From Eutreptiella sp. 'Long Island Sound 2002' (lineage: Eukaryota; Protista; Euglenida), in the NCBI GenBank assembly GCA_964036045.1, contig OZ038378.1:23002001-23066000 (forward strand): a stretch of 64,000 nucleotides of DNA. The letters run 5' to 3'. The position numbers and the translations under genes are program-made. The notes below the pieces were generated by a model that was not told the origin of the DNA, did no database searches, and was given only the letters and a program-made list of their open reading frames with translations. This document shows, piece by piece, positions 3,025-22,084 of this stretch. The first letter of the stretch is position 1. The number at the start of each line of letters is the position of its first letter.

Positions 3025-4754
3025 TATGTATGGCCGGTGCCTATTGACCCTTGGCAACTAAGTGGGCCCAAAGGGTAGGGAGGGGGGGGGGGGTCGCATA
3101 CCAGAACTGAGGAGATTCCCCCCCCTCGGAAAGAAAAATAATTCTACAAGGGGCTAAACCAACAATGCAACGCCTTGGTGTATGTGGCATTTTCCCACAT
3201 GGTTTTGATCTAAGGCGATTTTCAGCCGACTCATGGCGGCCTGAAAGGTTCTAGTACACTTTTGTGATACCAATGCACAATGTCCGATACCCCTTACACC
3301 ACTGAACCTAGAGACTGAGGTCTTGAGTGTACGATTTAGGTTTCAATGTGGTACTAAAACCGCATCTTGTTTTCCTCGTGTGCATGATGTCTTGACACTT
3401 TGTCTTTATCATTTCACTCTGTTTTTGGCCTGGTTGTGCTTGTTCGGGCCGACTGTCTCCTCAGCTCCCACAAGCACACAAACAACTCTGTGCAATCCCC
3501 CCCCCAAAAAAAGGCCAATAATGAGCTGAAATATTTTGTGTGGCATTGCAAAGGACCCAGGTCCCAAGTCCATCAACATATCACATATACTTTTCTCTTT
3601 CCCCCCTTGCCTTCCCTGTGGGTGGCACCACGTTTTAGGGGGGAGGGTGGGGGTGGGGGTGGGGGGTCAAAACTTGGTTTGGCCTTTTGCTGCCACGGTG
3701 CGTCGATTCGGACCCATTTCCTGTTCCACTTTTTTCGGCTAGATGGACCCCTAACCAATGACAAAGGTCTTGGGTGCTACCTCCGACTTTCCAAGATCGG
3801 CCCCTGTATGGGGCCCCACTGGTGAGAACTTAGCCATTTTCAGGCTTTTCCTCTTGTTTTACAGCTCCAGCATCAAATTGTTTCTCGTGCATTTGCTCAG
3901 TGCCCGCAATGGTGCATGCAGGTGTTCGTCGGCTGCCAGCATCAGCACTTTATTGCCATTAGACTGCAAATAGCCATAACTTCACTCCAAAATATTTTCA
4001 AAATTCAACTCGTTTTGGTTTTACTCAACCTATGTGTGCGTGTGCGCGTGTGCGCTGTACTATTCACGAGGGTTGATGGCTTTTAATGTCCTGGCCGCTC
4101 TTGCGACGGGAGGGTTAGGGGTTAGCGGGTTAGAGCCTGCCTGAAGCCTGCCCTATCCCTCCCCCGGCCCCCCGGTATGTCGCGGCGCGGCGGAAGGACG
4201 TCCGCCCTCGACTCAGGTCACCTCACTGGAGGCTCTCCCGTGCGCCATCACCGGCACCCTGCTGCCCCCCTGGTGCGCCGGAGCCGGCGCCTCCTTGCCT
4301 CCTGCTGGGGGGGCGTGCCCCCCTCCTGGGCTGTGCCCCAGGACCACCCGTGCCGCTGCCTGCGGCCACGAAGGGGGGAGGGGGCGGTCCGGAATCCCCA
4401 CCCCCCATGCCTCTTCCGCTGGGCCGGCAGCGGTTGAAGCCGACGTCCCCTCATGTACCTCCTCCGGGCTGGCGGTTGCCGAAACCGACTGCCCCAGCTT
4501 CAGCGCCGGTGCTGCTGGATGCTCCTGTGGTGGGAGGGGGTGATTGTGATCCCCCTCCCCCCATGTACGCACCTTGTGCCCTGAGCGCGGGCTCGGGTTG
4601 CACGGGGGGGGGGGGGGTTCCCTAGCCTGTGGCATCACTGGGCTAGCTGAAACGAAAGCCAGCTGGGCCCCACAACTAACAGAGAGGCCGGCGGCTCTGG
4701 CAACCGGCTGGGCCCCTCCGTTCCCACCGCTGGTGGGCTGGGCCAATGGCCCCC

Positions 4755-6980
4755 TCAAAGATGGCGGCAGAGCCGCCACGCCCCCCTCCCCTGGCCCCGT
4801 GGTCTGGGGGGCAGGAGGCTGGGGTGAGGGCAGTGGAGGGGGGGGGTAAGGCCCCATTCCCCGCCAGAGCATACGGCATCTGACCCCCAGGGCGCCGCAC
4901 AGGGCAGGCGGCCCGGGGGCGGGTTAGGGCTTAAATTGATGGGGGAGGGGGGGGCAGAGCGCAGCCCCCCCTCCCGAAACCTACCCATCAGGAGCCCCAG
5001 CGTCGCCACCTGGAGCTCCTCTATGCACGAGCGAGTGCACAGCTCATCCTCTAGCATCTCCTGCTGCCACCCCCCTCCCTGTGAGACATCCTCAAGAACA
5101 ATGCAGCCCCCTGATGCCTTAGGGCATTGGGTCAACGCCACGGGGGGGCTGGTCGTGACCACCTCCACCCCCCTCCCCCCTGGGTGCCCAGATAAGCGGG
5201 TAAGGGCCGTGGGGTTAGCACAGATGGCGCCCTGGGCGCTGGGGGATGTGTCCCCACCAGCCCCAGGCGCCCCGGTAGCGCCACAGACAGCGCCATCGGC
5301 AGCCTGCATGCTGCCCGAAAAGCCAGAGATGGCGCCCTGGGCGCTGGGGGATGCTTCCCCACCAGCCCCAGGCGCCCCGGTAGCGCCACAGACAGCGCCA
5401 TTGGCAGCCTGTGGGCTGCCCGAAGAGCCAGAGATGGCGCCCTGGGCGCTGGGGGATGCGTCCCCACCAGCCCCAGGCGCCCCGGTAGCGCCACAGACAG
5501 CGCCATTGGCAGCCTGCAGGCTGCCCGAAAGGTCACAGATGGCGCCCTGGGCGCTGGGGGATGCGTCCCCACCAGCCCCATGCGCCCTGGTAGCGCCACA
5601 GACAGCGCCATTGGCAGCCTGTGGGCTGCCCGAAAGGTCACAGATGGCGCCCTGGGCGTTGGGGGATGCGTCCCCACCAGCCCCAGGCGCCCCGGTAGCG
5701 CCACAGACAGCGCCATAGGCAGCCTGCAGACTGCCCGAAGGGTCACAGATGGCGTCCTGGGCGCTGGGGGATGCGTCCCCACCAGCCCCAGGCGCCCCGG
5801 TAGCGCCACAGACAGCGCCATAGGCAGCCTGCAGGCTGCCCGAAGAGTCACAGATGGCGTCCTGGGCGCTGGGGGATGCGTCCCCACCAGCCCCAGGCGC
5901 CCCGGTAGCGCCACAGACTTCGCCACTGGCAGCCCGCATGCTGCCAGAAAAGTCACAGATGGCGCCCTGGGCGCTGGGGGATGCGTCCCCACCAGCCCCA
6001 GGCGCCCCGGTAGCGCCACAGACTTCGCCGTTGGCAGCCTGCGTCGCGTCATATAGGGGGCAGGGCTCATCCGCCCATACCCCCACTGGGCCCCACAGGT
6101 TCAGGGGGTCCTTGCACTGCAGACATACCACGGCCCCCTGCTCGATGAGGCCCAGCCCGCTGCACGTTGCCGCCGTCGACTCCACGGAGTCCAGGGCGGC
6201 GTCGGCTGCCGATGCCGCCGCCCGTGTTGTGGCGGAGACCGACACTGCGATGGCTGCTGCTGCTGCCACTGCTGCCGCGGCCGCTGCTGCCACGGACGCG
6301 ACCGCTCGACGCGCCCAAGTGCGGGCACGCCCCTGGGCCCTCCGCCCCGGCACGCCCCGGGAGGGCGTCGTGGGCGGGGGCACGCATGTTGCCAGCAGCT
6401 CTGGCCACTCCGCCGTGGCGGCCGCTTGCCCTGGCGGGGCCCCGGCGCGCGCGATGCGCACGATAGCCTCCTTGTCCGCGACTGCCTGCCGCACGGCTGG
6501 CGTCTCGTTGCTGTCTTCCTTGGTGTCGTCGCCGCCGCCACCGACCGTGCTGCTGCCCATGCCGGAAACATTGTTGCCGACCGCCGGCCTGGTTGCGCCC
6601 CGCGGGAGGCCCGCCAGGCGCTCGATGTCGTTCGTCACGGCCGGCAGCCAATCCCACATCAGCCCCGCGAATATGCCCCAGTCGCGGCGGCTTAGGTGGG
6701 GCAGAGAGCGGTGATAGCCCTCCAATGTGGGCTCCGCGCGGAGGCGCCTTGTGAGGGCCGCGCGATGCCGCCATAGGGCCTCCTCTATGGCCGCCATAAG
6801 TGGCCGCGCGAGCTGGCCGGGGTCATCCAGCTGCTTCTTCCCGCTGCCGACGACGGTGGCGGCGGCGGCCCGCGACGGATGTGCGCGGGGCTCGGCCCTG
6901 CGTGAAGGCCGTGGGTGGCCCTCAATGCTGGGAGACGGCCGGCTCTGGCATTTTGTGGGTAAGCGCCCAACCACGGTCAA
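4755..6980 (-). CDS. 741-aa low-complexity gag/ORF1-like protein of element A with 35-aa repeats; probably continues by frameshift into 4872-4213
   Basis: Long open frame. Motifs EWPELL..PGRRAQGRAR, CLQCKDPLNLWGPVGVWADEPC and ELCTRSCIEELQVATL are conserved in element B. No enzymatic domain recognised; the translation start is uncertain. Confidence 0.55.
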   Translation of the reverse strand: MTVVGRLPTKCQSRPSPSIEGHPRPSRRAEPRAHPSRAAAATVVGSGKKQLDDPGQLARPLMAAIEEALWRHRAALTRRLRAEPTLEGYHRSLPHLSRRDWGIFAGLMWDWLPAVTNDIERLAGLPRGATRPAVGNNVSGMGSSTVGGGGDDTKEDSNETPAVRQAVADKEAIVRIARAGAPPGQAAATAEWPELLATCVPPPTTPSRGVPGRRAQGRARTWARRAVASVAAAAAAAVAAAAAIAVSVSATTRAAASAADAALDSVESTAATCSGLGLIEQGAVVCLQCKDPLNLWGPVGVWADEPCPLYDATQAANGEVCGATGAPGAGGDASPSAQGAICDFSGSMRAASGEVCGATGAPGAGGDASPSAQDAICDSSGSLQAAYGAVCGATGAPGAGGDASPSAQDAICDPSGSLQAAYGAVCGATGAPGAGGDASPNAQGAICDLSGSPQAANGAVCGATRAHGAGGDASPSAQGAICDLSGSLQAANGAVCGATGAPGAGGDASPSAQGAISGSSGSPQAANGAVCGATGAPGAGGEASPSAQGAISGFSGSMQAADGAVCGATGAPGAGGDTSPSAQGAICANPTALTRLSGHPGGRGVEVVTTSPPVALTQCPKASGGCIVLEDVSQGGGWQQEMLEDELCTRSCIEELQVATLGLLMGRFREGGLRSAPPSPINLSPNPPPGRLPCAAPWGSDAVCSGGEWGLTPPLHCPHPSLLPPRPRGQGRGAWRLCRHL
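5221..6045 (-). repeat. 105-bp coding tandem repeat, ~8 copies (GATGAPGAGGDASPSAQGAICD..SGS..AA.G.VC)
   Basis: Eight GG[DE][AT]SP units in the ORF; DNA period 105 bp. Confidence 0.9.
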
Positions 6981-7444
6981 GGCGCCAGAAAAAGAGCGTG
7001 TACTATTAACGAGGGTTGAAGGCTTTTAATGTACTATTTCATGTACTATTAACGAGGGCAAGGGCCGATTAAAGTCCTTCACGCTGTGCGACGGGTCAAG
7101 CGAGGGGGTTGTGGGTAACGGACTGGCTGCGCCCCCCCCCCCCCCCCCCCCGGCCACCGCGACGGAAGGACTGGGCGTCTGGGGTCAGCTGACCTCATCA
7201 CTGGCCCTCCCATGCGCTAGGTCCGGCGCCTTGCTGCCCCCATGGTGCGCCGGAGCCGGCACCTTTGTCACACCTGTGGGGAGTGAAGCAACGGATACTC
7301 AGCTACCATATGACCCCCGTGACACAGGTCATAGGTCATCGCCAACTACATTGTCCTGCTGCACTGCAGCACTGTTTGTTCAGTAAAGTATTTAAAGCAA
7401 AGTCTCGGCAGGTCACCTCACTCTGCCCTCCCCATGGGCCCCGA

Positions 7445-10400
7445 TTAGGTCAACCGAGGTTGCTTGGGCCAGTTCTCAGGGCTGTCCTCATTTGACTCCT
7501 CTGAAATGTGAGATCCCCCGGAGCAGTTTGAGTCGGTGTCATAAGAGTCGGGCATCTCCTGCAGCCCCAATTCCCCCCAAATATCCTGCACTAATTTTTG
7601 GTTCATGACACATTCATACGCCTTTTTTGCTCCCTTGGACGCCTTGGCGTCTGCGTGTTCATTGCCCGTCACCCCCACATGTGATGGCACCCACAGAATG
7701 TCCACGCTGTCCCCCAGTAGCTGCCATTGCCCCCACAGGTCCTCCCACAGGTCTGCATGCGCCAGTGGTCCTCTGGACCCCACCCACTTGTGCCTGGACC
7801 ACTTGTTGCATTTTCCTGTTAACCCTTTATACACCAGTTCCGAGTCGGTCACCACCAGGAGAGGCCGACCTGGACATTTGTGATACACAGCCCGAAGGGC
7901 CGCTTTCAGCTCCGCTCTAGTTATAGATTGCCGCTCTGTGTTCAACAGCGGCAACTCCTCATTGCGGACATCATTGTCCCCAAACCACACACCATAGCCT
8001 GCATGATGCACACCCCCTGTCTCCTGCTTGGACCCATCGACAAAAGCCACATCCCATCCTTGCTGAGTCTTATTTTTAATGCGCTGTAACAGTGCGGGCA
8101 AAATCGACTCCCATTGGGCCTTTTTTGGTACTTGTATCCCCCGTCCTCTGACAACCGCACCCTGTGGCTGCATGGAGGGAAATGGCTGATCTCCGTCCAA
8201 AAATTTTTTGAGACAAGTGCACAGATGCCTGGCCTCTTGTCTCACAAATGACGACTGTGGCGCTGATGCCCTCACTTCTACAATTGTCATCCAGGCTACC
8301 ACAAAGTCAGGCACTGCCACCGACAGTGATCTAAATTTTGCATCGCATCGTAGGACCCACGACGCTCTAGCCGCGGCCCATAGCGCCAATCCCTGTGTGG
8401 TTCGCAGCGATAACAGTGGCTGAGCCACCAGCAACGTATCCATGGGGCACATGACCCCGTCGCGGCCCCAAACCGGGCCAAAGGCTTTACGCACAATATC
8501 AACGTCCACTGGCCAGAATTTGCACGCCGTAAGCACATGCTTGATGGTTTCCAATACAGAGCATAAAATGCAGTTGGGCTGATGATATGCGTGCTGTGTG
8601 CGCGCTCCCACTGCTAGTTTTTTCCACATCGCCCTTCGCATGAAATCTCGTTGCGCCCCCGGCAGCTTGAGTCGCGCTAGCTGTTCCCACACCTCTGGCT
8701 CCTGCCGCTTTTGTGGCGGCTCCAGCGGGCAAAGCACCGCCAGCATTTTTTGATTTGGTTGCGCCCACTCTCTGGGCAAGTCGTGCACCGGTAAAGCAAG
8801 AACTTGCGGTATCTTTGTCCGATACAGTGGCGCCCATGTTGGGGGGAGTTTCACCGCCGCCTGCAACTCTCCTCCCTCCACAATTTGCGCCAAAGTGCTT
8901 ATCCCCTTTCGCACGAGACTCGGAGAGTAATAGGTATGCCCCAATTTGTTTCTGAAAAGCACATTGTGCCACAGTGGCATGTTGCTGGGTGTTCCCACCA
9001 GGGGCGGGGCCGCCGCCCGCTGGCGCAACCGCGAAAACATGTGCACCGACGCTTGCAGCCACGTTCGCGCGCACATTTTCACCACCGCTAGCTGCAGATA
9101 TGGCAGGAAGGAGGGTCTCAGCGACAGCCCAACCGAGTCCGCCCACTGTTCGAAGTCCGCTAGCCAATGGCCTGAGAAGCACACTTTATCCTTTAGGACA
9201 GTCTGAAACAAGCGCCCATATTGAAATCGCACCCAGACAGCCAGTGGGTACGTCCACACTCCACCCTGGCTGTACGGCAGAGCCAACATCGCCGGGCTGA
9301 GATCCCACGTGGAGAACCCCAAGGCAATTTTGAAAATGATATTGAGAGTCGTCAACACTTTCTGCGACGGCTCATACACCTGTGCCGTTAACTGCACCAC
9401 AGGCTGCACCCAAGTCTTGTAGATCTGTGCACGTTCTGAAAGGTCCAATGGTAGTGTTTTTAGAAAAGCTGCCCTGGACTTCATTTTTGCCATGGGGCCT
9501 GCATAGGCCTGCTCTGCATTCACCTGCCCGATTAAAACACCCAGATATTTGACTCTTTCCCGCACCTCCAGTCCAACGTAACGTTCAGGCAATGGTCCGG
9601 ACACCCGTTTAAGTACCGCAAAAGATTTAGACGGATTGACATGTAGTCCCGAGTACCTCCCGAATTCTCTCAAAAGACGCATAGCTCGCTCTGCCTGCTC
9701 CATAGCTTCTTCATCCCCCCCAAGTATCCAGATCAGCAAGTCGTCCGCATAAAGCATTAGCTGTGCTCCCGGACACCGTGCCCGGAACTGATACACCAGA
9801 AAGATTGTGAGTAAAGCAAAAATTGGTGGGGATAGTGGATCCCCTTGTCGTATCCCAGACTCCGGCACCATTTGCAAAGTCTACTGACAGAAACGTGCCC
9901 TCTATCGCCGAATGCCACAGGCCTTTGGCATTGATTATGTGCTGCAGCATTTGCCTATTGTTCAAAAAGCCCTTTTGAGCTGGCGGGACAGCCACCTGTA
10001 ATGCGTCTTCTATGAGGACTAGAATGGTTGTAGCTATCCATTTCCATATCACTGTCTGCAAAGCAATAGGTCTCATCTGGTCAACCGTGTCCGCAGCCCG
10101 ACCCTTTGGTATATTCCGCTGCAAGCTCACTAGCCATTGCGCCGGAACCTGGCGCTGCTGTAGACAGCTCTTGACCGCCATGGTCATAGGGGGCACGAAC
10201 ACCTCCGCAAATGCTGCATAGACCTCCACCGGGATCCCATCTAATCCCGGCGACGACCCCCTCTTCATGCGCTCGAGAGCAGCGTGCACCGTGTCCTCAG
10301 ACACATCCTTAGTCACCTTTGGCAATGCCTTGCGCACCCTGCGCGCTATCCCCAGCCCTTCCATCCACTCTTTGCACTGCTCAACCGACTGGTCTGGTTT

Positions 10401-11743
10401 TTTCATGACTTGCTCCCAGAATTCCTTAAACGCAATAGCAATGTCCCGCGGTCGTGTGCAGTACCCCCCTTCTTGATACCATACAACTGCCTCTTGGCCT
10501 GCAACTCCCTCAATTGCACATGTACTTTCCTCCGGCGTTCGGCCTGTGCAGCAGCCTCGTGCTGCTTGCTAAGAAGCTCGTCCTTGAGCATATGACACAG
10601 TGTGCGCTTTTGAGAGTCTTTGACCTCCTGGTCAGCATATACCACGAGCAACTGGTACGCCTGGGCTGATGCTTCAGGGCAGACCCCTTTGTCTGCCAAA
10701 TACTCCCACCCAGCCGGGACAACTCTTCCGGGCGACGACAATCGCAGAATGCCCTGTATCGGCAAGTGGTCTTGCTCTTGAATGATTGCCCCTGCATCAT
10801 CCCACCACTGAAGTACATTTTGCGAGTCTGGCGCCTGTAAGCCCTGCAAAAGGCCTCGTAGGTTGTCCACTGCTGACTGATCACTTAACATTTCTGTAGG
10901 GAACCGCTGACGCGGTTGCACCCTGCGCAGCGGTGGTTGCTCGAATTGTACCACTACTGCCTTGTGGTCGGAAGCTACTGCTGTTGTGGTGTACACTCCT
11001 TGAATATACTCCCGCAGAGAGTCTGCCACATGCACCCTGTCAAGACGCCTGGGCTTCCACTTCACCCCGGGCTTTTGCACCCACCCGTACGTGAACCCAT
11101 TCGGGCGTTCATCACACTCTCCATACAAGACATCCCACGCATCATGCAGTTTGCACTTTTCCAGTATCTGAACCTCCTGCTGCCTAGCCTTGGCATTGAG
11201 CTGTGTTTTTAACTTACTTTCCTTCATTCCTTCGCTGTCCACTCCCGGAATTATATGGGAGTTGTGGTCGCAAAGTGCGATCAGTGGGGCTCCTGCTGGG
11301 CTCAATCGCCTTCCCAGTTGCTCCCATTGTTTTTGTCGTTGAGGCGCATCGTGATGTAGATGCCCCGCCAACACTTGTATGGAGTCCCCCGACACATGCC
11401 TGAGCACAGCTACAATGAGCCGATGTCCAATGTACTCCGCCGACTGCAATTCCCAAACTGGAGTCCTCCACATCAGCAGTACCCCACCACGCATGTTAGT
11501 CGGGGTCGGCACAGCCGCCAACCCATACCCCCGCTTCTCCGCCCACAGCTTTTGAGAATCTAGCACCGGCTGCGTGGTGATATGGTGCTCCTGCACTGCC
11601 GCTATGTCCACATGATGTTGTCTCAGCATGCGGATCAACAGAACTTTACGCATTTCCGTCTTATCCGGTGGCTTCCTGTGCCACCCATTGACGTTGGTGG
11701 TTACCGCCGCCCAACGCCGGCTCATCAAGGAAAGGGAAATCAT
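7445..11743 (-). pseudogene. LINE ORF2: APE/EEP endonuclease - reverse transcriptase - zf-RVT - RNase H, broken by 2 frameshifts and an RT deletion
   Basis: EN motifs TNVNG, AVQEHH, LCDHN, RRLDRVHV, SDHKAV. RT motifs SSPGLDGIP, MRPIALQ, AQKGF, LSVDFA, GIRQGDPLSP, YADDL, KYLGV. zf CILCSVLETIKHVLTAC. RNase H motifs FVDGS, RAELKA, VTDSELV, WVPSHVGVTGNEHAD. Frameshifts near 10465 and 9875; the usual ~50 aa between DFA and GIRQG are missing. Confidence 0.92.
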
Positions 11744-12205
11744 CGCTTTCGCTTGTTGAACTTCAGATCCACATCACACTCCATGGCTGCTGACGACGCC
11801 ACCGATGTTGAGGCACCAGACGACGCCACCGAACTGTAGCTACGCGTCGAGGTCACAGATGCATTACTGGAACCGGCTCCCCCTTTGCCTTCTCCTTTGC
11901 CTCCGCCCTTGGGATTGACTCGCTCCCTACGCATGGCATACTCGGGTTGAGAAATGACCTGCATCAGAAAATCTCCTTCGGATCCCCGAAATACTGATCC
12001 CAGAATTTTGGGCGTTTCCGCTTGTGGTACACACACTTTCCACGTGAGGGTGCGTATCTCACCCACTGACCATCTCATGCGTCGTACAATGAGATTCTCC
12101 ACTTCAGAGGTTTGCAAGATCGCCATGACCGCCTTTTCCCCCCACCATGGTGGCACGTTGATCAGGAACAGGTTGTCTGCCGGTCCCCACTCGGCTGGCA
12201 GCTGT
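11740..12205 (-). CDS. C-terminal fragment of LINE ORF1 (RRM-like start, basic/Ser-rich tail)
   Basis: GVQLPAEWGPADNLFLINVPPWWGEKAVMAILQ...KFNKRKR*; its stop overlaps the ORF2 ATG as ATGA (11743-11740). Confidence 0.6.
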
Positions 12206-13299
12206 ACACCTATGGGGGGGGGGGGGGGGTGTCCCCCCTCCCTTGTCGCCCTTGGGGCCCCGCCGGTGCCGCCGCCCGCGGCTGCTTGATGGGGAGGGGG
12301 CCCTCAGGCACTTCCTTCCCCATCGCATTCCCCACATGGCCGGCGGCTACCAGAGTGGGGAGGGGGTGACTGTGACCCCACTCCACCCACGAGAACGCCT
12401 TGTGCCCCGGGCATGGGCCCAGGCTGCGCGGGGGTTCCCTTGCCCGCAAGACCATTGGGCCGGCGGCTGTGGGAGCCGGCTGAGCCCCACAGTGCGCGGA
12501 GAGGCCGGCGGTTCCGACAGCCGGCAAAGCCCCTCCATTCCCACCATTGGCGGGCTAGGCCAGTGGCCCCCTCAACGAAGGCAGCGGAGCCGCCACTCCC
12601 CCCCTCCCTCGTCCCTGTGGTGTGGGGGCAAGGGGTGGGGGGCCGGGCATGGGAGAAGGGGGGGCAGGCGACCCAATGCCTCCTCGCCAGAGATAGGGCC
12701 ACCACGAGGGGCTGCTGGGCGCCCCCCTCCTTCCAAGCAGGTCAGCAATGCAGGCACAGGGGAGGGAGGGGCTTGAAAAGCGCAGCCCCGCCTCCCGAAA
12801 ATCCTCAAAAGAAACTGTCCCCCAAAGCGCCGCACAGGGCGGGCCGTCTGGGGGAGGGTTAGCGCATAAACTGATGGGGGTATTTCCGTGTGTCCCTGCC
12901 CGCACCCCACCTAAGGGCAAAGCACAACAGAGGGAGGGGGATACATATTGCAGCACCCCCTCCCGGAAATCCTGCAGCGGCAGCTCGAGCACTGCCACAT
13001 GCAGCTCACCAATGCACCTGCAGGTGCATACCTCCTCCTCGTCCAGCCTCCCCGGCAAGGGGTGAGGAGGGGGGGCAGAAGTGTGCCGCCCAAAGCTGAC
13101 CGCGGGACTGGCTGGGCCTTCCAAGGCCACAGACGTATGAACGCCCCCTACCGTCCCTCGGTTCCCCAAGTTGCAGTGGTGGTTGGGGGAGGGGGCTACT
13201 TTCAGCAGGGGGGGGGGGGTCAGATGCGCGCACCCCCCCCAAAAAAAACATAGACAACACTGCTCAAGGCGGGGACCGAGTGCTCCCCCATTGACACTA

Positions 13300-13770
13300 C
13301 GGCTGCAGCTAGCAGTGCCTGAGCGTTGGGGAATGCGTCCCCACCAACACTCACGGGAGTCGACACTGTGGTTGCAGGTGACGGCGCCTGAGCGCTGGGG
13401 GATGCATCCCCACCAACACTCACAAAGGCAAACACCGCGGCCGCAGCTAGCAGTGCCTGAGCGCCTGAGCGGGATGCGTCCCCACAAGCACTCACAGAAG
13501 TCAACACCGCGGCCGCAGCCGGCAGTGCCTAAACGCTAGGGGATGCGTCCCCACCAACACTTACATAAGTCGACATTGCGGCTGCAGCTGGCGGCGCCTC
13601 AGCGGTGGGGGACGCGTCCCCACCAACACTCACAAGAGTTGACACCGCGGCTGCAGCAGGCGGTGCCAAAGCGCTGGGGGATGCGTCGCCACCAGCACTC
13701 ACAGAAATAAACAACGCGGCTGCAGCGAGCGACGCCTCAGCGGTGGGGGACGCGTCCCCGCCAACACTCA
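13300..13770 (-). repeat. 69-bp coding tandem repeat, ~7 copies (VSVGGDASP.A.A..AAA.....) in element B
   Basis: a[tc]gc[ga]tcccc-like cores at 13333, 13402, 13474, 13543, 13612, 13681 and 13750. Confidence 0.85.
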
Positions 13771-14829
13771 CAGGTGGCTGCAGCAGACGGTCCGCTAGCC
13801 GCTCATGCAACCACTCAGCCGCCTGCTCTACGGCCAGCCCGCCGCCTTGCGACGCACTCCGCACCCCCTCTAGGCCTGGCAGACCACAGGGCTCGTCCGC
13901 CCATTGGCCCACTGGCCCCAATAGTCCCAGCGGATCCCCCCAGAGGGCTGAGGGCAGCCATATCTCGACCCCCCGCTCGCTGACGCCTGGACAGCACATC
14001 GCTGCAATCCCCGCTGGTGCCGCCGCGGCTACCCCCGCCGCTCCTGCTGCCCCATCCGTCGCCGCCCGCTGCAGCCGCTTGCGGGCCTTCGCCCGCGACC
14101 TCCGTCCCGGCATCTGTTGTAGTGTCTACGGTCGCGGCGATGGGGCCAGCGCCGGTGCGAGAGCCGGCCACTCCATCTCCACTGTGTTTTCCATGTCCCC
14201 TACGGGCACTGCCACATGCGGGGGCGCTGCCAGCGTCGGCTCTGCTGCCTATGCAGGCTCCTCGGTCCCCAAGGCTGCCCGGGCCGCCTCATGGATAGCC
14301 GCCAGCAGCACGTGGAGCTGCCCCATGAGGACTGCTACCGTGGCCGCCTCCGGGTCTTCCTCCTCGTTGAGTCCCGCCCTGATGTGTTTTACATTGACCG
14401 CCATGTCGATGAGGGCGGCTGCCGCAATTGACTAGAGGTTCACCCCACGTGCCGAGAGCGCCTCCACCGTCTCCGGGGCGTTGTTGGCGAAGACGTTGGC
14501 TGCGGCGGTGGCGGCGACCTCGATGGCGGCCGCCAGCGCTGGTACATCGACCCCGCATTCGGCGAGGCCGCCAGAGGTAGCGGAGTGCTTCCAGCCGCAG
14601 CTGGCGGGGGCGGGGGCATGGGGCCCCTCGAAGCGCAGCCAAAGGCTGCGGGCAGCACTCGGCCAATGGGACCACCGGAATGCCCCTTCGGTGGGTAAGC
14701 CCCTTAGCACGACAAGCAACACATACAAATGGGTACTATCAACGACGGCAAGGGCCGATTAAAGTAGTGGACGCTGTGTACTATGAACGAGGGAGACGCA
14801 TATGTGGCTGCGAGTTGGATGTGCACTAA

Positions 14830-15606
14830 CCCCCCCCCCCCCTTGTATAAGCTACGCTAATGTACGGAATTATTACGGTCCCTACGCCCACTGTAGCTTG
14901 GACAAGGGCGTAGCTTGCGCGCAACACATACAGCTACTAGCACACACGTGCGCATGCCCATGGTATGAGTGCACCTTGACCTCCACCCACATTTCCAAGT
15001 GCATGTAAACACAAGAGAGCCTTGGGAACATGAAAATTTCAGGTTCACACCCATGTTGGCGCAAGCAATGAAGAATGCGAAGCCTACAAATGTTCGGCTT
15101 GGAAACCCTTCTTGCGATCATACACCATGCGGAACAATTGCACATGCTCACCACTTGGAGATGCCTGAAGTCAATTCTTGGGAGGGGGGCACAAGGGTGT
15201 GTGACCATGCACCGGTACACATCTGCCCACCCTTCATGTACGCCAACAACGCAAATTGGTCCCCCCTCTCCAATGGTCCCTTCATTGTACCATCGACACG
15301 GTCACCGGTGGAACATGTGAAAATAACTGGACGCATAGATTCAAAAAGAGAAGATTGCATGGTGAGCTGATGCAAGAAAGAGGAATATAAAGCACAAATA
15401 TTCCCAAATTCAGAGCCAAGTGGGTTGAAGTGGGCAAAGACTCACAAATGTGTCCATGGCTCCATGTAATTGGCAAATGTGACGACGAACCCATGTCTTA
15501 TGTGGCCGCACTACATCTTGTACGTAATTAAAATTACGCACACCCTTAGTACGGTCCCTACTGCCTACTGTAGCTTGGACAAGGGCGTAGCTTATACAAG
15601 GGGGGG
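14830..15606 (-). mobile_element. Internal-deletion derivative of the pogo-like element at 1624-3024
   Basis: Perfect TIR ccccccttgtataagctacgc / gcgtagcttatacaagggggg, followed by TA; same 45-bp subterminal direct repeats; 15230-15540 aligns with 2640-2950. Confidence 0.85.
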
Positions 15607-16711
15607 TACAGGGGGGGGGGGGGTAGTAACCCGGCACGTGGGCAGGGCTGGTTGACATGCACGCTGCTTACTCTTCTAGTCAGAACCTCTGCGCGTGGGC
15701 TTTGCTTACGTTGTCTCCTGTGTCGCCCTTCCATGCCCCTATCCGAACAGGGGGCGAGCCACGTCCATCCCGTCATCTTTCGACATTCCCTACGGCACGG
15801 CAGGGCGGCCAAAGGCGGGGGGGGGGGGGTCTTGGGTCTTTGTCGCTTGGGGACTGGCGGTGTGAGGGTGATGTGTGGTGAGCGCATCAGTGGGTAGCGT
15901 GAGGGGCCTAGGGAGCGCAGGCATTGGCGTTTGCGTGGGCCTTCTGGCGGTGCCGCTGGCCTGGCGTGTGTTGGTGCTGGCTTGCACACTTTGTGATGCC
16001 CGCGGGCACAACAATGCCGCACGCCTCTCTGCATGAGTGTGCAACGAGGGCAGGGCGGGAGTCCGTGGAGGGCGCATGTTTTCGAGAGCGGCCACCGGTC
16101 CACGTGACTCGGGATGTGGTGTCCCATGCTGCAGCATAGTGCTGCCGGGATTCTCGGCCTCTTGCATGTGGAACACGCTGGCAAACAGTGCGTAGGGCAA
16201 ATTGAGTGAACATGCGGCATGTGTGTGACCGATGTCGGTGCGCTGGCTGCCACCTTGTGGCGCACGGTGACAGAGTATGGCGCCTGTGGCACGCGGCCGG
16301 ATCCAATGACCAGCAAAAGGGCACTCGCAAAGGTGGTGGAAACCCCCTTTGGCGCATAGAGACGAGGACGGCATCGGGCCCGTATTCAGGCAGCCTGCCA
16401 GTGCACGCTGCAAGTGTGCCTCTTCCACCTCTGCGGATGTGCGCCGCACACGGTAGACATATGGTCGTGGCGTGTGTGTTCGTGCATGCTTGCGCAATGT
16501 CCATGTGGATTCACAGTAGCGTGCCAGCTGTTCCATGTGGGATATCATGGCTGAGCGGCAGTTGAAATATGGTCTTCTATTCAGTCCTGCCAGCACCGGG
16601 CCCCCAATTGGGACCAGCGCTGTTGAGCCTGTGATGATCTTGGCCGGGTGTAGTGTGCCTGATTTGATGATGTGTATGTGCGCGTGTGTGCCCGAGCACC
16701 GCACGTACGTA

Positions 16712-19101: not shown

Positions 19102-21394
19102 CTATAGGCATGTGCCACGGAGGCGGGCAGGCAGGCGGGTTGACAGGCAGGCAAACCCCTTGGCATGAAGACACATACTACCCATATTTCATTGAACAAT
19201 CACATTTTCACTAATACCTACGTCGATTTTGCACACTATGCGCGGGCTGCGCGGTAGGACTCAGATTGGCATGCAAAGCAAACACAGGGAAAATTCAGAG
19301 CTACTCCCAATTTGTAGACAAATCCATTCCAAAAGATTCACTTGCCTTCATGGGTAAATGTTTGCAGTTTGTTCGGACTTAAAGACAGAACACACAAAGG
19401 GTACTCTGACACGGGTGGGTGCATCAAATGACACTATGAAGATCGTGACTGACTGGCCCTGATCTGCTTTCTGGCAACCTTAGCACCAACTAAATTGACT
19501 GTATCTCTACGATTGTGGTCTGCCGATCACCTTCCGCAGGTCAAGTGTCTTAATGATCATTGGTGCACATCCCATCGTCATGTTTGTCACGGTCTGAATC
19601 ACCTTTGGCATTGCATCATCGAAGACCATGGCTTAAAAGGCTGTACCAAGGATCGTCCTGAGGCACAGAAAGCAAGCAACTTGCCTACTTGATCACTCGT
19701 TGAATTACACACATGTTCAACACCCCAATGGCTAAGCCCAGGTACGCAGGCAGACAAGCAGGGGTGCTTTGCGAATGCTCAGATACACTAGAGCCAACAA
19801 TGTAAAATTCTCTGCCGATATCCCGGCCCCAGATTGCAAAGGCCACGAAATCTGAAGTACAAAATGGGGCTTGCGGGTGCTGATGCTCGCCTGGGGCTGA
19901 AATTCATACCATGGCGCAACGAAGCCCACAGGAAACATGAAGACCCCGCCAAGGGGACTAGCCCACAGCATGTACACATGCAGCGAGGATGTTGGGGGGT
20001 GTACCTCCTCGCCCTTCTCCTCTTCTTCCTTCTCCTCAGGCTCCTCCCCATCCTCACCCGGCTCCTCCTCCTTCGGGGTGATAATCTTGTCATAAATCTT
20101 GTCCTTGGCAATAGGCTCCAGCAACTCCTTTTCCTCTTCTTCCTGTTTGGGCTCTTCCTCCTCCTCCTCCTCGGCCTCCTCCTCGTCCTCGTTAACCTGG
20201 CATGAGCAAGGTGAGGGACAGTGTCAGGGCAAGGAGACGTGTCAGCAGCATTACCTCCTGTTTGAATGGGAACCACAATATTTTGGAGCGCAGAAATGTG
20301 AATGGTTGCGATTGACTCAGTGGCACTACTGGACTCGTTTGTCTGCACAGACACAGCGCACTTTCCCAATGAGCAAATATGGCAACGGCATCAGGAAATA
20401 GGGCTTTCAACTTTGGGTGTGTGGGGGCAAAATCTCCCTAAAATGGGAATTTTGGCGCAATCATGATTCACAGCTGCAACAGTTTGGGAGTCTTTGGGAT
20501 GCTATGTACACTGTGGTTCTCATAAACACATCTGAGAGTTCATCTCATGCCATATGTGTGCATCAACCCGTTTGTGGCACAGTGCATAATCTGCAAACGT
20601 TGAGCGTCCTCATGGTGCTGTGCAACAGCTCAACTCATCTACTCACTATCTGCATACTAACAAAAACGCGCTACCATCTATCTCTGTTGGCACACGCCGG
20701 CACTTCTTTGGCCATGACAGAGCTAGTGGCCCTAAAATGGAGGAAAACTGGAGACTGCAGGGGGGGAGGTTGATTGCAGAAAATGACAGGGTCATTTTCC
20801 AGGACCCTCATCCCTCACTTCCTTTTGTTCGGAGGTCCTGCCAATTCAGCCCTGTTTGAATGGAGCCGAGGAAGAGACTCTCCCTCCACCTTGCTGCCTC
20901 CAGCAGGAATAATACTCCAGCAGGAACCAGGTGTATCACAAATCTTGGCAGGTCAAGTTCGTGGTCCGCTAAGAACGACGACGCCACCCTGCCCCAGGCA
21001 ACCTCAGCCCACCCAATCCAAAGCTAAAAGCCTGGTCGCTCTCCCTCTATGCCGTAATCAGTGCCATAACCACATATTGAGCAAACAATCACGGTGTGGC
21101 CCATTCAACGACAAATACAAACATCTTCAGCGCACCATCATTACAAGAGTGGACAGATGGTAAACAACTAAACGATGAAAGGGCAAATTACCATGTTTCT
21201 CGTGTTACAAGTGATATTGATCTTTGGTGGTTTTTGCGTAGACCAAATGCTTCGTAGCAAGCAGAGAGACTGACAAATGCAATGAAAGGCACAAAGCAGA
21301 TACAGCACAAGAGCAGGCACAGCGGCAGGGCAGGGGCAACACAGGAGTTGGGGCAGGAACAGAGACCGAGACAGAATGAGACAGACAGACAGAC

Positions 21395-21444
<50 letters not shown>

Positions 21445-22084
21445 GGAGAAGAGAGAGATTGACAGTGACAAGAGCAGGGGCAAGGACAAACCCAGGGGCA
21501 GGGCACAGAAGGCAGCAGAGGAGGCAGCGGCAGACACCTCCTTCTCAGGCACTTTGGTGGCACGCCCGGTCTTGTACAAGTACTGGAAGTGATGCACCCA
21601 GTTCTCCCTGTTTGCAAGGGACTTCATCCCCTCCTCGAGCTCAGGGACCTCCTCCGCAGCATCCGTGAGGGGGCGGGTCTTCTCCTCCTTGGGCTTAGGG
21701 GGCACGCCCTCCTCCTCTTCCTCCTCCTCCTCCTCCTCCTCTTCCTCGTCCTCGTGTTTAGTGAGAACTCCCGCTGGACTGATCTGCGAGCCGGACGCAA
21801 TACGCGCGATCTGGGCACGCAGATAATTGATCTCTTTGCCCGGGAACTCCGGGTAGCTGCTCACGTTCGCATCCAAATTCCCGGTGAAATACTTCTTGAT
21901 GTTGCGGGCAGCATTGATCTGCTGCGGGGTCACATCCGGCAGATGCGTCCACGGGGCGTTGGGGTATGAGCAGACCCAGTACGAGTACCGGTTCAGCCCC
22001 TTCCCCATGGGCTCAGGCTGCACGTCCACTGGAACCTGGGAAATGCAGGAGGAGAGGCGTGGCTGTCGGCAGGAAGGGGGCGTG

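Follow-up and report, generated by a model that had tools for sequence, protein, structure and literature searches.

How a single 17-bp sequence comes to punctuate a whole array of repeated elements is the question raised by a 64-kb stretch of the genome of the euglenid Eutreptiella sp. 'Long Island Sound 2002' (contig OZ038378.1, positions 23,002,001 to 23,066,000; this whole stretch is referred to below as the window, and positions are counted from its first letter). The core in question, TGTACTATTAACGAGGG, has five matches in the window with three or fewer mismatches, all of them on one strand, against 0.04 predicted from shuffled sequences. Read along the minus strand, the order is core5-a'-core4-A-core3-b'-core2-B-core1, where A and B are long elements that lack a reverse transcriptase (RT) and a' and b' are short stubs. 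An earlier inspection of the letters alone (the sequence-only reading) had placed the five cores correctly but interchanged the lengths of the two stubs (a' is 28 nt and b' 26 nt long), and it viewed the core as the target of a non-autonomous family. The explanation favoured here, to which we assign a probability of about 0.68, is that a long interspersed element (LINE), designated U, inserted into a (CA)n repeat, and that A and B were then copied one after another into the 17-nt tag at the end of U, each landing duplicating this tag.

The core and the U LINE

The proposed search for the 17-mer in the genome (2.28 Gb) was carried out, and at one mismatch or fewer it yields 1371 clustered copies, versus 2 for the reversed control; they are dispersed across all chromosomes and flanked by U, by A/B units and by gNgc(AC)n. 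In 30 of 30 sampled loci all cores of a locus lie on one strand, and the layout common to these loci consists of a U block ending in ...cacatatgggtct, the core, anywhere from no to many core-ended units, and gNgc(AC)n. The combination of ATGGGTCT and the core is present in 343 copies genome-wide, and in seven places it lies 476-485 nt 3' of matches to the C-terminal open reading frame (ORF) of U. The coding region concerned, about 310 aa long and situated upstream of U's 3' untranslated region (UTR), is conserved; it has 6835 candidate copies in the genome, with open frames of up to 1827 aa, while 350 relatives were found in the public protein library, and it terminates in a cysteine-rich end (CPxHxLPACxTCKRLR...CCxKGHH). 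This domain matched no Pfam family, either in the window (16074-16671, minus strand), at a second locus (L030:14-961) or in the relative P0085. The latter protein (1821 aa, 35% identical) carries an N-terminal apurinic/apyrimidinic endonuclease (APE) domain, an RT whose nearest solved structure is human L1 ORF2p, a weak zf-RVT match, and the U C-terminal domain at residues 1269-1546. The APE+RT architecture of U is read from P0085 together with the open frames of 1700-1827 aa at U loci, and pieces of RT also adjoin B copies. Judged from these sequences, the core is the 3' terminal tag of the abundant LINE U, probably of the APE+RT type, and not the private end of an element.

With respect to the target of U, five sequences with truncated U, which represent four independent loci as two of them are paralogous, have (CA)n immediately upstream, as does the copy in the window; of 26 B copies at other places, 22 or more are followed directly by gNNc(AC)n or (AC)n. 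The array in the window is likewise bordered on either side by (CA)n-like DNA, viz. gggcacacacgcgcacatacaca before it and gcgcacacgcgcacacgcacaca after it. Because truncated U copies abut (CA)n at their 5' side and the borders of the arrays are (CA)n, U is a LINE that targets (CA)n and makes an RNA with the core at its end. The window most likely holds a one-direction pile of retrotransposon copies inside a former (CA)n microsatellite, and the array, which the sequence-only reading had closed at 14793, continues into a 5'-truncated LINE to about 16670. The view of the core as a free-standing target is likewise replaced, as the core is the 3' tag of U and U itself resides in (CA)n. That reading had also held that its proposal would fail if the cores mapped to the ends of a known autonomous element; the core does represent the end of a presumably autonomous LINE, but site-specific insertion is still supported, as described in the next section.

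MinoAg1 is an (AC)n-targeting APE LINE of animals that is embedded in microsatellites in one orientation, and it has the relatives Kibi, Koshi, Waldo and Dong (PMC3812793). U resembles MinoAg1 in having (CA)n on both sides and in its single orientation. However, U is a euglenid element with an ORF of 1700-1830 aa and a C-terminal domain of about 310 aa without a Pfam match, and hitch-hikers homing to a tag are not described for those animal elements in the same review.

The last 17 columns of an alignment of 3' ends remain conserved in U, A and B as well as in other families, whereas the sequence upstream of them diverges. Among A, B and several other families the 3' ends are homologous over about 50 nt, while U shares only the 17-nt core, and no similarity beyond the tag was found between A/B and the last 1.4 kb of U. 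The possibility that the tag is a folded 3' RNA motif was rejected, as 13 diverse ends yielded no consensus structure, and in an Rfam search for RNA families and ribozymes, including the hammerhead, nothing scored near threshold. As a separate observation, two 3-kb stretches about 122 kb apart (L021 and L024; G000:C1:150.52 Mb and 150.65 Mb) are collinear and about 99% identical outside gaps, which points to a recent segmental duplication that carried a U array with it.

Probable insertion of B into the tag

If B inserts specifically into the core, then its 5' ends should be found next to cores. Full-length 5' ends of B were gathered together with their 17 upstream bases by a pattern search (n=61), and 53 of them abut a core, 2 a spliced leader and 6 other sequence, while none abuts (CA)n; the junction between B and the core shifts over a range of -2 to +1 nt. 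The cores on the 5' and 3' sides are identical in 20 of 22 B copies, and 16 of these 20 pairs are non-consensus and comprise nine variants, although a random pairing of the observed variants would give only about 15% matches. One variant of this kind, ACCTCGTAAAAAGTACA, is known from a single locus, where it is present on both sides of B. The two copies with unequal cores are the B of the window and that at locus L046, with a difference of one base each. Further, six B copies whose 1.9-kb bodies differ by 0-0.37% have between them four different cores and three kinds of flank after the core, and the divergence of B bodies is 4.3% in pairs with the same core versus 4.8% in pairs with different cores. 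Inheritance of the tags with the element was considered and rejected, as the tag variants do not follow the B tree.

Uninserted sites of the form U-core-gNgc(AC)n number at least 52 and mostly have the core variant AGCACA followed by gagc. The same core and flank also surround B at three loci (L036, L039 and L041), the first of which reads gggtct-CCCTCGTTAATAGCACA-B-CCCTCGTTAATAGCACA-gagc(AC)n. The empty sites that the sequence-only reading had hoped for in other strains or haplotypes are thus available at the level of the family, within the same genome. Since 53 of the 61 ends abut a core and none (CA)n, the flanking cores are matched, and empty sites exist, the simplest reading is that B homes to a tag already in place and, as R1 does with its target, duplicates it, and to this extent the earlier proposal of repeated integration at one 17-bp sequence, with duplication of the latter, is well supported. 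The tag variant ...AATAGCACA accounts for about 40 of the 52 empty sites, whereas ...AATAGTACA, which is similarly common among all U ends, is rarely empty; riders may prefer the variant matching their own RNA, or the ...AATAGTACA copies may be older.

The stubs deserve separate consideration. The sequence-only reading described each as a short copy of the 3' end of the element that follows, comparable to a pseudo-LTR (long terminal repeat). However, b' ends in ...acattaaaagccTtcaa and B in ...acattaaaagccAtcaa; B carries 'ccatcaa' rather than 'ccttcaa', and there is one mismatch between b' and the last 17 nt of B. Similarly, a' and the end of A disagree at 5 of 28 positions, and 3 of the 17 positions of core4 are unlike those of core3. 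The element-specific terminal direct repeats are therefore real, but b', a' and core4 all have mismatches and are not exact copies. In addition, the unit preceding a full-length B (n=48) is of the B type in 36 cases, of the U type in 10 and of the A type in 2. From these comparisons, the short upstream copy would represent an earlier truncated insertion and not a pseudo-LTR.

The behaviour of B can be compared with that of R1Bm, which inserts into a 14-bp region of the 28S rDNA that becomes the duplication (PMC1919474). As in R1-type APE LINEs, where nicks on both strands yield the duplication, there is one fixed target, one orientation, a target duplication of fixed length and frequent 5' truncation. 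B thus displays a single target, a single orientation, a fixed-length duplication and truncations sharing one 3' end, all of which are expected of site-specific non-LTR elements, but not an APE and RT of its own. In contrast to R1, the target here is the 17-bp terminal tag of another retrotransposon and not a host gene, and the inserting elements A and B encode neither RT nor nuclease. The likeness to R1 is one of behaviour.

A parallel for RT-less riders is provided by the short internally deleted elements (SIDEs) of R2, which lack RT, use the 3' recognition sequence of their partner and land at the specific site of the latter (PMC3414825). A and B are similar to them in being RT-less and in carrying the 3' terminal sequence of a partner. 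However, R2 SIDEs are internal-deletion derivatives of R2, whereas A and B have nothing but the 17-nt tag in common with the 1.4 kb of U that is visible, carry a long ORF of their own, and land at the end of the partner instead of the partner's own (CA)n target. In LINE/SINE pairs (SINE, short interspersed element) and in ORF1-only derivatives (HAL1, and ingi/RIME and L1Tc/NARTc of trypanosomatids), the parasite shares the 3' end of its partner and needs its RT. In the present case the shared tail is only 17 nt long, and it is at the same time the DNA target that is duplicated; further, unlike SINEs transcribed by RNA polymerase III, the copies headed by a spliced leader, described below, argue for a trans-spliced RNA polymerase II transcript.

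RNA intermediate, order of events and alternatives

The short units of the arrays, 14 to about 1350 nt in length, are pieces of B-type 3' UTR with many start points and one common end, which is the hallmark of 5' truncation during target-primed reverse transcription. Three B copies are headed by a spliced leader, and one of these begins ACTTTCTGAGTGTCTATTTTTTTTCG; the spliced-leader string TTTCTGAGTGTCTATTTTTTTTCG appears in two papers on Euglena (PMC5654406, PMC6242988). The leader junctions read TACA+CGCTC in one B copy and CACAG+CGCTC in two, as expected from splicing at the AG of AATAG|TACA, or of AATAG|CACAG (the AGCACA+G variant, C12:52349469). The AG of the tag upstream of the source copy is thus a working trans-splice acceptor. 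These junctions indicate that B RNA is made by read-through from upstream, that the core holds a trans-splice acceptor, and that such RNAs are reverse-transcribed. The truncation series and the leader-headed copies provide clear evidence that B passes through an RNA intermediate, and a mobilisation of A and B through RNA is supported. At one place (L086/L034, G000:C13:25526600-25530918) a leader-headed B copy and the truncated copy that follows it have catcagaccgctagtacctaccagcaggcctact on either side, suggesting that the whole unit was duplicated in tandem locally or inserted into another repeat.

The favoured explanation would require the following order of events. A 5'-truncated copy of U, the (CA)n-targeting and probably APE+RT-encoding LINE, would first have inserted, its RNA end supplying the tag CCCTCGTTAATAG(T/C)ACA, followed by gNNc(AC)n. 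Four insertions at the least, namely a', A, b' and B, would then have struck the tag of U to yield five tags, as each landing would turn one target site into two; A and B would be full-length events and a' and b' extremely 5'-truncated ones. U has since been split by an element resembling a miniature inverted-repeat transposable element (MITE). B is the youngest unit of the array in the window: it is recent because it is 99-100% identical to three other copies, and the old age of A is evident from its stops, its nested LINE, and relatives that do not exceed 83% identity. The presence of a stub of the same family before each full element is most readily accounted for by bursts in which a single family at a time was active at a hot site. 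As regards the machinery, A and B would borrow the ORF2 protein of U, as suggested by their co-location and the shared tag, and the tag on read-through A/B RNA may pair with the target tag to choose the site. Landing just 3' of a tag would also furnish a promoter-less element with a trans-splice acceptor for its own ORF of about 900 aa.

Several observations weigh against this explanation. U lands in plain (CA)n and B never does, so that either one machinery, with U as the obvious candidate for its source, has two specificities or a second LINE is involved. The flanking tags in the window are not identical, with 1 mismatch around B and 3 around A, and of 42 short units that were sampled, no more than 22 carry the same tag on both flanks; priming in the (CA)n tail, or template switching, may have added some of the units. 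Lastly, two paralogous loci about 122 kb apart differ by exactly one 45-nt B stub plus core, located after the last core, but this difference may represent a deletion between tags and not an insertion. A tentative idea, which we regard as possible though doubtful, is that read-through A/B RNA has a tag copy at either end, and that these two copies, by pairing with the target tag, direct the site of first-strand priming as well as the 5' junction (an RNA-guided, two-ended homing), that the AG of the tag is the acceptor for the protein of about 900 aa, and that the RNA alone sets the target of the LINE enzyme, be it (CA)n or the tag.

If, alternatively, entire arrays were formed in single events, by an RT that jumps from RNA to RNA during one (CA)n event or copies a read-through U-B transcript, then the tags would be derived from RNA, and each element would have been made together with the stub that precedes it. 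This is consistent with the exact junctions between units and the lack of (CA)n between them, with arrays that begin, where a start is visible, with U beside (CA)n, with several short units whose tags do not match and the recurrence of the variant GTTGATAG at unit 3' ends, and with a U stub, tag variant and 'gatc' flank common to four loci. However, near-identical B bodies are located behind U, A or B stubs, each with its own matched pair of tags, while at L050 and L051 the same stub, tags and flank accompany bodies that are more than 2% apart. Further, b' and the stub at L087 are unlike the end of the element downstream of them, and the window B, 99-100% identical to other copies, and the decayed A with its nested LINE are of different ages. 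In view of these results, formation in single events appears unlikely.

Integration at the level of DNA, by a tyrosine recombinase (YR) or similar enzyme acting at the core, or amplification of core-flanked units by unequal crossing-over, could account for the direct repeats of the core that flank the units and for B-B tandems with identical tags (L047, L056), and recombination between tags could produce the difference of one stub plus core between the paralogous loci. However, the graded series of 5' truncations with a fixed 3' end, the leader-headed copies and the dispersal of copies across all chromosomes are contrary to it, and neither a recombinase nor a YR domain turned up in A, in B or in as much of U as was visible, making this a very improbable origin. 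Least probable of all are Penelope-like elements or those with a restriction-like endonuclease (RLE, of the CRE/SLACS type), whose pseudo-LTRs or long target duplications would explain the terminal repeats: although the head-to-tail order with a partial upstream copy resembles Penelope-like pseudo-LTRs and euglenozoan relatives harbour RLE elements specific for spliced-leader genes, the sole tag-linked RT belongs to a LINE with a probable APE nuclease, which is N-terminal in P0085 (an RLE would lie C-terminal to the RT, and the C-terminal domain has no Pfam match), no GIY-YIG or RLE domain was found by Pfam in the window, P0085 or the B-ORF proteins, no hammerhead or other Rfam match was obtained, and the upstream stub is often from another family and not a copy of the element's own end.

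The array, which the sequence-only reading could fit into no class cleanly, hence matches site-specific, target-primed retrotransposition with fixed-length duplication and 5' truncation reasonably well. It is not a new class of element but a twist on known behaviour of site-specific LINEs, and what is new is the homing to a tag with duplication of the latter, and the use of the AG of the tag as an acceptor. Site-specific LINEs are studied as models for programmable, safe-harbour insertion of DNA, and an open question concerning them is how much of the targeting is due to the nuclease and how much to pairing between RNA and target. The present system offers a natural contrast in this regard, as a LINE family goes into (CA)n and RT-less riders sharing only a 17-nt tag with it go exclusively into the tag, and a single genome offers more than 50 empty sites, hundreds of filled ones and very young copies. 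It also connects retrotransposition with spliced-leader trans-splicing in a euglenid, and helps to account for the head-to-tail piles of repeats in this large genome.

Elements A and B and the remaining features

Without the nested LINE, A is about 2.74 kb long, and B 2.93 kb; they are diverged paralogs, as had been proposed, with 72-83% identity in patches and collinear ORF motifs. Once the nested LINE is set aside neither contains an RT or nuclease domain, in agreement with a non-autonomous nature; the statement that RT and endonuclease are absent holds for A and B proper, but not for the raw interval, as the LINE at 7278-12206 carries both. The last 960 bp of B, which are 99-100% identical in three other copies, have 1429 candidate 3' ends genome-wide, and its first 419 bp only 82 candidate 5' ends; B is a young family with well over 1,000 3' ends and few 5' ends. 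The listed B copies (91-100% identity) cross without a gap the point where an ORF2 would be located. Relatives of A are 71-83% identical, with 29 candidates.

The ORF of B contains 7.8 copies of a 105-bp repeat (5219-6042) and A has 6.8 copies of a 69-bp repeat (13300-13773). Both repeats preserve the reading frame (35 and 23 codons, respectively), and an imperfect palindrome around GGGGACGCATCCCC is common to them. Sixteen predicted proteins of 379-980 aa were matched by the B ORF, several of them uninterrupted at 815-980 aa, and its relatives range over 683-980 aa, while the window B is frameshifted near the C-terminus of its ORF. Motifs common to the A and B ORFs are EWPxL, LWGPVGxWADEPC, GGDASPSAQ repeats, and ELCTxxCIxELxVAxL...FREG. 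Because open frames of 815-980 aa are present in other copies and the motifs are collinear with those of A, the ORF appears to be real at the level of the family. Pfam detected no domain in the A or B ORFs or in the 16 matching proteins, an Atlas search with the B ORF gave no usable match, its AlphaFold model was uninformative (mean pLDDT 41), and testing codon positions in young B copies produced a flat or weak result, with no usable signal of selection.

The nested LINE consists of a small ORF1 followed by APE, RT, zf-RVT and RNase H in three frames, the four Pfam matches being located between 7445 and 11743. A query covering 12700-11800 splits in two, its positions 495-901 matching LINE copies (88-98%) and positions 4-479 other loci (74-84%), and the only locus to span both halves is the window itself. 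Homology among copies of the LINE stops at about 7278, and the other copies, whose flanks are unrelated, all share the 3' end ...GTTGCTTCAC(A/T)CCCC, without poly(A). The family has 1673 candidate copies (87-99% identity), of which the copy in the window is slightly 5'-truncated. As its copies end at 12206 and about 7278 with unrelated flanks, this LINE is evidently a later and unrelated insertion into A, and its flanks, ccccaTaggtg and ccccaCaggtg, likely represent a duplication of about 11 bp. A scheme that took A for a full-length LINE and B for a derivative of it by deletion was rejected, as the RT part ends exactly at 12206/7278 and never continues into A. The positions of all features are collected in Table 1.

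Table 1. Features of the core-delimited array and its surroundings (window positions)
Feature	Position	Strand	Remarks
Downstream array flank	4033..4055	-	degenerate (CA)n, element strand gcgcacacgcgcacacgcacaca; direct reading
core1, 3' side of B	4056..4072	-	element strand CCCTCGTGAATAGTACA; 1 mismatch
Element B, full length, 2926 bp, without RT	4073..6998	-	ORF 6797-4755
core2, abuts 5' end of B	6999..7015	-	0 mismatches; B starts CGCTCTTTTT...
b' stub, 26 nt	7016..7041	-	partial core (aatagtaca) and last 14-17 nt of B-type 3' UTR, 'ccttcaa' variant
core3, 3' side of A	7042..7058	-	0 mismatches
Element A, 3' part	7059..7277	-	3' UTR end ...ggactttaatcggcccttg; homologous to 3' region of B
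Nested unrelated L1-like LINE, outside the core system	7278..12206	-	Pfam; other copies with same ends, unrelated flanks
Element A, 5' part	12207..14731	-	decayed ORF (4 stops) collinear with B ORF
core4 CCGTCGTTGATAGTACC	14732..14748	-	3 mismatches
a' stub, 28 nt, A-type 3' UTR	14749..14776	-	5 mismatches to A's own end
core5, putative original tag at 3' end of U LINE	14777..14793	-	1 mismatch
U LINE 3' UTR, last 35 nt	14794..14828	-	...cagccacatatgcgtct; matches U ends at other loci
MITE-like insertion interrupting U 3' UTR	14829..15627	.	22-bp perfect terminal inverted repeats
5'-truncated U LINE, C-terminal part of ORF2 and 3' UTR	15628..16670	-	tblastn with U C-terminal domain matches 16671-16074
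Upstream array flank	16671..16693	-	degenerate (CA)n, gggcacacacgcgcacatacaca

The MITE-like element at 14829-15627 is about 800 bp long, and in addition to the terminal inverted repeats, CCCCCCCTTGTATAAGCTACGC, it has subterminal direct repeats. Its terminal sequence is also found directly after the 3' end of the L1-like LINE at two loci (L074, L081). Upstream of the array, at 21205-22029 on the minus strand, there is an ORF in which a segment of conserved appearance (…YWVCSYPNAPWTHLPDVTPQQINAARNIKKYF…) precedes an acidic and serine/leucine-rich stretch of low complexity; this ORF may be an exon of a host gene.

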